Source: Mytilus californianus (taxonomy: Eukaryota). From it: a stretch of 64,000 nucleotides of DNA. Below the pieces are notes generated by a model. That model worked only from the letters and a program-made list of their open reading frames with translations, did no database searches and was not told the origin of the DNA. The translations under genes and the position numbers were made by a program. Every line of letters begins with the position of its first letter. The stretch's first letter is position 1. Location of the stretch: positions 103,230,001-103,294,000 of the forward strand of contig NW_026262581.1 in assembly GCF_021869535.1 (NCBI RefSeq), in the 5' to 3' direction. Shown piece by piece: positions 40,101 through 43,100 of the stretch.

Positions 40101-43100
40101 AGATATTTGTTTGGTTGAAAAACATGATCTTACTCAGCTCGGAGATAGTGCTGCATCACAACAGTTCACACTGATTTTATACGTTTGAAAATTCTTGAAC
40201 CATTATAACCACAACACAAGTTTAGAATATAATATGGAAATCCTTAGCTATAACTCCGCCACCCGCTTGAGATACAGATACGTAAATGGATGATCTCGCG
40301 GAATTTTATGAAATTTTGCCTACAACTAGAGTACGAGGGACTGCACATGAACATCGAAACAGTAATATATAAAACTTTTATACTTACTGAGATATAGCAA
40401 AAAATCGTGACGTCGTCGCTAGGAATGTTATTTTTCGACGTTTTTAGATATTACAAAGAGACTTGAATGAATTATATAGCAAAAACTAATTCGGTGTTGA
40501 CCCCCTTTAATTTTCATATTAGTAAAGCGGAAATTTTAGTGGCAATAACATATTAATTTTAAAGATAATTCATAGGATACGTTTTTGAGAAAAGGCAATT
40601 TAAAGTCATTTGTTTCAATATTTACGTGCATCCTATACATTTGTACTCCTTACTACAGATTATTCAATTTCCTATATATCCGAGAGTATAACAGTTACTT
40701 TTCGATATTCATATGCAGTTCCACATGCTCAAATTGCTTTCAAAATTTCATAAAAATCCGTGAGATTGCCCATGTACGTACCTGTTACCTCAATAAAGCA
40801 TTGATTTGAATTGACGATACGTACTAAGTCGTTAACATCATTTCCTAGACCACAGAGACTGAATAATATATATGATCGATTTACTCACTGCCGCAGTACC
40901 ACGATGAAACTGAAGGCAAATCCAGCCAATCCTATAACCATGTATGCTAGAGGCAGTCTGTAGCTGTTACCGATTTGTTTATCGTGCCCATAATAACCAT
41001 AGAACAAGAGTGAGTATTTCACTATCCCCTTATTTAAAAAATACACACACAAATAAGTATATCATGAAATGATGAATACGATTTTTAAAAAGTTTTAAAT
41101 CCAAAAAAAAGCCTTTTTTACAAATATACTTTGCCAACATTTTCAATAGGCCAGTTTGAGGCAAAGCATAATCTGCCACCATTATATATAGACAGGAAAT
41201 GGTCCCAGTTATTATACACTCGGAATGAATGAATCCTGATGAATGATCTTGAAGGGTGCAATAATCATTAAAATTAGAGTTTTTTGGGGTAGAGTGTTTT
41301 CATCCTTTTGTGTTCTATTGTAATATAAGTTGTAGCAGTAGTTAAAGAAGTAATAAGTTGTAGCAGTAGTTAAAGAAGTAATAAGTTGTAGCAAATATAA
41401 TCGTTATTACAAATATAATCGTTATTACAAATATCGTTATTACAAATATAATCGTTATTACAAATAGTATTTAACTTTTCATAAAATAGGAAATATGCGA
41501 AGAAAAATTCGCAATCATAATTTTACAACCTTTTTCTGACACATGTATAAAAAACATATTTTACATGATAATTTGGTTTCCATGATAAATGAACTTACTT
41601 CGGCATCCCATATAGATTTTAGGTCTGAGGCTGTTTCTTTTTCGTCTTCTGGTATTGTTTTATAGCCAACACTACCACTGGGACGTCCGAAGAGAATTTG
41701 AAATAAAACAGTTAATTATATACTTAAACATAACCACTTAACTTGCATTGTCTCTAGACTTGTTACTAGTGAAAGAAATGGGAAAAGAATAAAAAATGAC
41801 ATTCGTAACAAAGGAAATCTCTGTTTCCGCAACTGCGAGCAATCTTCAATGCGATATTGATCAGTGATGTTTTTGTTTTCTATTAAACCGATAATATGGA
41901 GGTAATATATAAGTGTATTCTCTGTAATGATTTTTATTATGCGTTCTGTAATGCACCTTGTGTTTGATCTGATCTACATTGAAATTTAAACGCTGCCAAA
42001 TATCCATGTGCTTGTCCCATGCCTTCGTCATAGCTGAATGTTTTCGTTGTTTAAGAAATTCGATGTTGATGGCATATCTTTTCAAGTCTTCGTTTTTATT
42101 CACAACATTACTTTACTAACCTCCAGACGATTTAGAGCTTGATATATATAGTGTGAGTCACTCCTCTATTACTGAATAAAATCTGTATGTTAACCTCTTG
42201 ACGTCTTTGGTATGTGTTTTCTTGTTGCTTTCTCATAGACGTATACCCCATGCATCTCTTTTTATTCACATAATTTTAAAGATATACTGAAAATAGATTA
42301 AATTTTCCAATATATTCGATTGACATAGTTGTACGTTTTCAAGATTGTATTAACGAATATGTACATATATTGCAAACAATTAAGAATAACATGAACAACA
42401 CCATAACCCTTTTTCTTCTCAAGATGACTTGTAGAAGCATACTTATCTCAGGGATAATCAAAAAGCATAACGGCAAAGCTGCTAGCCAAATGTTTATCCA
42501 CATTAGCCATCGGAGAAATACAAAATATGATGAAACAACAGAACCAAAATGACCTAGAAAAGTAAAGGAAATAATATCTTTATAGAGAGGCTGTGGATCA
42601 TTAAAAGTGATTGCACAAGGTCATACTTTTCCCAGACTTTTAATGACGTTTTTACATTTAATCTATTGGGTGTGTACTGATTGATACTTTAGTTTGTGAG
42701 AACATGATTTATTTATCTGGAACTTGCTTTCAGTAATCATGAGTTCTCTCAGATTCGTACTTTGTGTCTTTTGTTCTTATACTAGTTGCGCTTTTTGCTT
42801 CGTATCAATCTATTGAGTTAAGCCGTTTCCAATTGCGTTTCACAGTTTTTTCTTATGTTGTGCTGTTACACCACTGTCCCAAGTTAGGGGAAGGTTGATC
42901 GAGCGCTCCGAATATGTCCAACCTCGCGGCATTCTTTTGTTAATTATTATTACATATAGGTTTCTGTTGTGTCGTAGTTCTCCTCTTATATTTGATGTGT
43001 TTCCCTCAGTTTTAGTTTGTAACCCGAATTTGTTTTTTTCTCAATCGATTTATGAATTTCGAACAGCGGTATACTACTGTTGCCTTTATTTATTTGGAGC

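Follow-up and report, generated by a model that had tools for sequence, protein, structure and literature searches.

The locus described here raises the question of whether an intron that begins and ends with adenosine can be removed from the transcripts of a functional gene and, if so, by which spliceosome. We analysed a stretch of 64,000 nucleotides (nt) from the mussel Mytilus californianus (RefSeq assembly GCF_021869535.1, contig NW_026262581.1, positions 103,230,001–103,294,000; hereafter, the window, numbered from its first letter), in which a TMC3-like channel gene on the minus strand contains an intron of 749 nt (41698–42446) with AT...AA borders. On the basis of orthology, conservation between species and selection on the flanking codons, we consider it likely that this is a genuine spliceosomal intron of a functional gene, productively spliced as AT-AA and probably by the major (U2-type) spliceosome.

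The borders are exactly as a first-pass annotation, made from the letters of the window, had described them, and so are the 99-nt exon that follows, the in-frame TAA upstream of this exon and the lack of an intervening AG. On the donor side, the codons ...ATT ATC CCT GAG (42447) are followed by ATAAGTATGC, which starts at 42446; the first letters of the intron after GAG (42447) are thus given as ATAAGTAT and its last as TTAACTGTTTTATTTCAA (41698), after which the 99-nt exon begins. The acceptor side reads ...TAATTAAC TGTTTTATTT CAA (41698) and, in another extract of the 3′ end, ...TATAATTAAC TGTTTTATTT CAA at 41698, with the exon opening as ATT CTC TTC GGA CGT CCC AGT from 41697. No AG lies between the in-frame TAA (41718–41716) and the exon start at 41697, and all of the canonical acceptors that would keep the frame in M. 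californianus are located inside the 99-nt exon. The intron after this exon is normal (GTAAGT...AAG/, where the slash marks the splice boundary), the next exon beginning at 41028. The exon upstream of the AT...AA intron is one that we take, from the general topology of TMC proteins, to encode the first transmembrane helix. An Rfam scan of the AT...AA intron returned nothing but a chance match to the T-box family (E = 0.13). Across 971 nt that include this region, the window shows 100% identity to M. californianus assembly GCA_021869535.1.

The gene belongs to the TMC family, as the first-pass annotation had also recognized: Pfam PF07810 matches the exons at 32608–32306 and 33740–33483 (E = 4.9e-12), a query with one exon against 1.8 billion representative proteins returned TMC proteins that are collinear with the window exon by exon, and the tblastn chains are collinear with proteins of Haliotis, Ylistrum, Solemya, Lottia and Mytilus, including TMC3 orthologs. 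Its 13 other resolved introns are all GT-AG with good donors, and no stops or frameshifts were found in the exons of four Mytilus species. The ratio of non-synonymous to synonymous substitution rates (dN/dS) for the whole gene of M. californianus is 0.14 against M. trossulus, 0.12 against M. edulis and 0.22 against M. galloprovincialis, with dS at about 0.33 in these comparisons. When the gene is divided at the intron in question, the exons upstream of it (106 codons) have a dN/dS of 0.083 and the downstream exons one of 0.22 (both against M. trossulus), and the 99-nt exon together with the start of the next exon, a segment that would be untranslated under the split RefSeq models discussed below, has a dN/dS of 0.14–0.18 (dS of about 0.3). 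The peptide encoded by the upstream exon is identical in all six Mytilus sequences compared, where each of the 8 variable sites is synonymous and none is non-synonymous. Judged by these ratios, both flanking exons are under purifying selection.

An examination of the orthologous intron, which the first-pass annotation had proposed as a check, gave GT-AG borders in five outgroups and AT-AA or AT-AC borders in four Mytilus species. With the intron placed after PE in phase 0, as in Mytilus, the genomic loci of the orthologs read GAG/GTACAC...CAG/ in the abalone Haliotis rufescens, GAG/GTAATG...CAG/ in the scallop Ylistrum balloti, GAG/GTTAGT...CAG/ in Solemya velum, GAG/GTAAGA...AAG/ in the pearl oyster Pinctada imbricata and GAG/GTAAGC...AAG/ in amphioxus (Branchiostoma), that is, GT-AG in all five, and the identical position in these five outgroups indicates an ancient U2-type intron. 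For Mytilus, we compared six sequences (M. californianus, M. trossulus, M. edulis, two assemblies of M. galloprovincialis and one M. galloprovincialis-like Logan contig). All six, which represent four species, have an unchanged donor, GAG/ATAAGTAT, and the 3′ tract GTTTTATTTCA(A/C) is conserved across species: the last three letters of the intron are CAA (...TTTATTTCAA/) in M. californianus, M. trossulus and M. edulis, and CAC (...TTTATTTCAC/) in all three M. galloprovincialis-type sequences. These ends have been kept in introns whose length ranges from 552 to 5285 nt and whose interior aligns at 71–80% or not at all. The branch position carries TTAAC in M. californianus and TTTAC in the other three species. 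In the accepted species tree, M. californianus lies outside M. trossulus, M. edulis and M. galloprovincialis, and we therefore take AA to be the older state and the final C of M. galloprovincialis to be derived. Judged by its borders and donor, the M. galloprovincialis ortholog is a classic U2-type AT-AC (type II) intron, and the comparative data as a whole are best read as pointing to a functional intron with AT-AA or AT-AC termini.

Homology of the encoded protein points to the same junction. Joining 42447 to 41697 would give HFGS...LCFLIIPE/ILFGRPS......IWDAE, a peptide of the same length as the corresponding segment in the TMC3 orthologs of Haliotis, Solemya, Ylistrum and Lottia. We enumerated joins whose 5′ side fell between about 45 nt upstream and 120 nt downstream of the donor and whose 3′ side fell between about 120 nt upstream and 60 nt downstream of the acceptor; 76 joins within this range are stop-free and of equal length, and none of them is GT-AG, GC-AG or AT-AC, which bears out the earlier claim that this junction is uniquely collinear with the orthologs. 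The registers AT-AA, TA-AA and AA-AT are indistinguishable from the mRNA sequence alone, and AT-AA is the only one that falls at the orthologous phase-0 boundary with a recognizable donor. Each of the canonical in-frame pairs available in M. californianus would delete at least the seven residues ILFGRPS. Given that both halves of the gene and the codons that flank the intron have been kept under coding constraint since the AT donor arose, the intron must presumably be removed in frame, and the AT-A(A/C) borders are the only in-frame route of removal common to all four Mytilus species. The features on which the argument relies are collected in Table 1.

Table 1. Positions in the window of the TMC3-like gene, of the signals at the AT...AA intron and of the alternative sites (a slash marks a splice boundary)
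Feature	Position	Strand	Remarks
TMC3-like gene	20396..45383	-	Pfam TMC domain; downstream limit 20396 is a weak tblastn match
Exon upstream of AT...AA intron	42447..42553	-	Acceptor TTTCTAG/GT at 42554/42553
5′ splice site GAG/ATAAGTAT	42439..42449	-	Agrees with U2-type consensus at all positions except +1 (A for G)
In-frame TAA	41716..41718	-	Six codons 5′ of the 99-nt exon
Candidate branch site TTAAC (fits yUnAy)	41711..41715	-	Putative branch A (41712) precedes the exon by 15 nt; predicted from sequence
Pyrimidine tract and 3′ end TGTTTTATTTCAA/	41698..41710	-	Final base A in the window, C in M. galloprovincialis
99-nt exon	41599..41697	-	Open; canonical GTAAGT donor follows at 41598-41593
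Alternative canonical donor GCC/GTTATG	42470..42471	-	Paired with AG 41679-41678 in M. edulis model CAG2252796
Alternative canonical acceptor, AG of CGTCCCAG/T in the 99-nt exon	41678..41679	-	From sequence
Only RNA contig reaching the donor	42424..42551	-	Run X25, 196 nt, depth 2.4

As to the spliceosome, the first-pass annotation had reported U2-type signals without a U12 signature, and the motif comparison agrees: the donor departs from the U2-type consensus only at +1, pairs with U1 at −2, −1 and +2 to +8, and is the /ATAAGT sequence that has been given as the consensus of U2-type AT-AC introns in metazoans (PMC5029451; PMC1557818). U2-type introns starting with AT are known but very rare: 24 were collected from five model genomes, and they were described as AT-AC only (PMC1557818). 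The AC ending that characterizes the latter class is found only in M. galloprovincialis and not in the window, M. trossulus or M. edulis, and the window intron is therefore best described as an apparent AA-ended variant of the U2-type AT-AC (type II) class. Removal through the minor (U12-type) spliceosome would be attractive insofar as AT-AA is a known subtype of minor intron (PMC1557818 Table 2; PMC10639083), alternation of the terminal base between A and C among species is typical of minor introns and M. californianus has TTAAC at a distance of 15 nt from the 3′ end. However, the agreement of ATAAGTAT with /ATATCCTT, the U12 donor, is limited to +1 to +3 and +8, and the conserved U12 branch motif TCCTTAAC is absent from the region 10–20 nt from the 3′ end in the four Mytilus species, where ATAATTAAC in M. 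californianus matches it at 6 of 9 positions and CATTTTACC (which includes the TTTAC noted above) in the other three at 4 of 9. Together with the U2-type donors of the five GT-AG outgroup orthologs (such as GTAAGA, GTAAGC and GTAATG), these mismatches make removal by the minor spliceosome very unlikely in our judgement. A different way for A-ended borders to be read as GU...AG is adenosine-to-inosine (A-to-I) editing of both terminal adenosines (that is, IU...AI), splicing then being dependent on editing. The pre-mRNA of ADAR2 makes a 3′ splice site in this manner, by AA-to-AI editing, and molluscs have ADARs. Against this, the final C of M. galloprovincialis cannot become G-like and is paired with an unedited A(+1), and the inverted repeats present are only 10–20 nt long, which is the level expected by chance, with none covering 42446 or 41698; we regard editing as extremely unlikely. 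An error of sequencing or assembly at the two terminal bases, which the first-pass annotation had thought implausible, can be dismissed with near certainty because the donor A recurs in six independent Mytilus sequences (four species) and in contigs of a close relative (‘organism B’), of which the Logan contig over 42436–42625 spans the donor with 0 differences; the terminal A recurs in three species.

Several observations weigh against productive splicing at these borders by the major spliceosome. Changes to the pair of first and last nucleotides are tolerated less well by U2-type than by U12-type splicing (PMC2831892), and no natural U2-type AT-AA intron, only AT-AC, is documented in the literature searched, the primary papers on first–last genetics being outside its scope. 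We also compared 2651 bases (40800–43450) with three RNA-type runs and the DNA run of one relative. The exon–exon junction 42447/41697 was seen in no RNA read or contig, in a comparison in which the TMC exons were barely covered and the 99-nt exon not at all, and one raw-read RNA run, sampled at 6%, contained no reads on TMC exons. In the X25 contig (Table 1), the upstream intron has been spliced out (43341..43274 joined to 42551), yet the contig continues 23 nt past the donor, and an RNA-type contig of 174 nt from run X10 is wholly intronic (41918–42091). No transcript-derived protein fragments across the junction turned up, only a RefSeq read-through model and a genomic open reading frame (ORF). 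Finally, public gene models break at the AT-AA or AT-AC intron in all four Mytilus species: for M. edulis, RefSeq gives a model of 190 residues (P0271) that ends at the stop in the intron and one of 528 residues with a downstream start, M. galloprovincialis is represented by a downstream model only, M. californianus is split, and the M. trossulus model contains 29 inserted residues. The idea that the intron is retained rather than productively removed, yielding a truncated N-terminal and/or a separate C-terminal product or marking an incipient pseudogene, draws on the X25 and X10 contigs, on P0271 and on the downstream starts of the C-terminal models of M. edulis, M. galloprovincialis and M. 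californianus. We nevertheless judge retention unlikely, given that the 99-nt exon and the first part of its successor, which lie between the stop in the intron and the RefSeq start methionine, evolve as coding sequence, that the upstream exons have a dN/dS of 0.083, that the exons are free of stops and frameshifts in four species, and that the ends of the intron are conserved and its interior is not; a single contig of depth 2.4 is, moreover, what unspliced precursor RNA would yield. Cryptic canonical sites would instead make the AT...AA borders irrelevant, and two such pairs are in frame and stop-free: GT 42471/42470 with the AG of CCCAG (41679/41678), which would remove 15 conserved residues (LCFLIIPE and ILFGRPS) and is used by the M. 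edulis model CAG2252796 (P0264), and GT 42442 with the AG of ATACCAG, which would replace 17 residues by IK. The former pair was missing from the list of alternatives in the first-pass annotation, whose argument that canonical alternatives damage conserved residues is upheld. In favour of such use, the acceptor TTCTCTTCGGACGTCCCAG has a fair pyrimidine tract. Use of these sites nevertheless seems quite improbable to us: the stretch of 15 codons at stake is invariant in length and varies at four synonymous sites, with one non-synonymous change, M. galloprovincialis has lost GT 42471 (CCG to CCT), both donors (GCC/GTTATG and TAA/GTATGC) are weak, the products would lack half of a helix whose conservation extends from amphioxus to molluscs, and the X25 contig runs through both cryptic donors. 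Taken together, the RNA data and the failures of gene models fit slow or partial removal of the intron combined with annotation pipelines that insist on canonical sites; retention or cryptic canonical sites would be compatible with them as well, and selection on the codons argues against both.

The 29-residue insert of the M. trossulus model was considered as a conserved solution in its own right and rejected. On assembly version.2 it would need a GT...TG junction, with no canonical pair that reproduces it, and the insert carries a frameshift in M. galloprovincialis, is shorter in M. edulis and is interrupted by a TAA in M. californianus.

We therefore return to productive AT-AA splicing and suggest the following course of events. 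The ancestor would have had an ancient phase-0 GT-AG intron of the major spliceosome, of which the first G and the last G would both have changed to A in the Mytilus lineage, the last base being C in M. galloprovincialis. U1 and U6 may recognize the otherwise perfect donor GAG/AUAAGUAU, and U2 may pair with the yUnAy branch site TTAAC, located 15 nt before the exon and followed by a U-rich tract. The terminal A would then dock, in the second step, on A(+1), replacing the usual G-G or the known A-C pair, and ...IIPE would be joined to ILFGRPS.... The first-pass annotation had called the two changes compensated, which is unproven: the partner of A(+1) named in the literature searched is C, not A, and M. 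galloprovincialis carries this C; A-A may instead be a tolerated, sub-optimal pair. Removal of the intron is probably slow or incomplete; the earlier proposal of an inefficient or regulatory step is unproven, as it relies on the one low-depth RNA contig that crosses the donor. As for the broader claim that the major spliceosome removes an A/A-ended intron in vivo, that the intron has been kept by selection across the Mytilus radiation (dS of about 0.3) and that M. galloprovincialis then moved on to A-C, we lean only slightly towards it. If true, this would provide a natural series from GT-AG through AT-AA to AT-AC at one orthologous intron, against which the strictness of the first–last contact could be gauged. 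An intron of this kind, conserved as AT-AA, having a perfect /ATAAGT donor and matched by AT-AC in the ortholog of a sister species, would demonstrate natural tolerance of a terminal A-A pair, and the four mussel species would form a ready comparative system for the fidelity of the second step.

The intron also bears on annotation. In every Mytilus annotation examined (loci L004–L007 of four assemblies; proteins P0263–P0271), the gene is mis-modelled, whether as 2–3 genes, with an N-terminal truncation or with 29 residues added or 15 removed, and a non-canonical intron at this position would account for these truncated, split or altered models. Gene finders that accept only canonical sites would lose real genes at such introns.

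Some further features of the gene and of the window were recorded alongside. Within the AT...AA intron, the block at 41918–42201 shows 2 differences in 279 nt relative to ‘organism B’, and the adjoining intron shows 11 differences and 10 gap letters in 211 nt; the block, which holds the whole of the X10 contig, may stem from a recent copy of a repeat, represent a conserved element of the intron or reflect precursor RNA, and Rfam finds nothing in it. The intron after the 99-nt exon contains a short tandem array of TTTGTAATAACGAT(TATA) units at about 41373–41522. The intron upstream of the AT...AA intron harbours, at 42844–43220, a very high-copy repeat with many chimeric joints and loose ends, the summed contig depth of which reaches about 8e5 for the related species' DNA run and thousands for the RNA-type runs; it is probably SINE-like or MITE-like (that is, resembling a short interspersed nuclear element or a miniature inverted-repeat transposable element) and widely transcribed. 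In an older M. galloprovincialis assembly (GCA_900618805.1; L009), the exon that follows the 99-nt exon carries 7 gap letters and a stop; the same exon is intact in the newer assembly of this species, and the older record is probably an assembly error. Elsewhere in the window, long mobile-element ORFs occur on the minus strand at 50488–46699 and 60426–58996, identified without a family search. In one element, a reverse-transcriptase part together with gag-like (CCHC) and RNase H-like ones precedes a tyrosine-recombinase-like ORF (...HSFRAGGAT...), an arrangement suggestive of a DIRS-like retroelement; after a second ORF of recombinase-like character (...HSFRRGGATWAF...) comes one that, read by eye, appears SGNH/GDSL-like.

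Among known systems, the U2-type AT-AC type II introns (SCN4A and SCN5A; TAF2 of human and fly; PMC1557818, PMC5029451) resemble the Mytilus intron in having A(+1) within the consensus donor /ATAAGT and no U12 motifs, and in being rare and conserved between species, and the M. galloprovincialis ortholog is exactly AT-AC. In contrast to them, the introns of the window and of two further Mytilus species end in AA rather than AC, and the Mytilus intron appears to have arisen from GT-AG within one genus rather than to be an old relic, with a presumed dependence on the major spliceosome. The U12-type AT-AA introns (RASGRP4, and MSH3, which is AT-AA in human and AT-AC in mouse; PMC1557818 Table 3, PMC10639083) have the same termini and show the same switch between AA and AC among relatives; these carry /ATATCCTT and TCCTTAAC and are processed by the minor spliceosome, whereas the Mytilus intron is without both motifs and has U2-type GT-AG orthologs. 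Engineered double mutants of yeast and human introns, in which G1 was changed to A and the last G to C (Parker and Siliciano 1993 and later work, as cited in PMC1557818 and PMC6461851), indicate, according to these citing papers, an interaction of the first base with the last one in the second step, and splicing can be restored when both ends of an intron are changed, the suppressing pair being A-C; in the same citing papers, we found no test of A-A in engineered introns. Unlike these A-C constructs, the A-A case of Mytilus is natural and seems to have been maintained by evolution. The TMC3-like proteins of other molluscs (for example, Haliotis rufescens TMC3 isoform X1, P0003, and Ylistrum balloti TMC3, P0002) share collinear exons, the TMC domain and the intron positions with the gene of the window, and it is in Mytilus only that this intron takes its non-canonical form.

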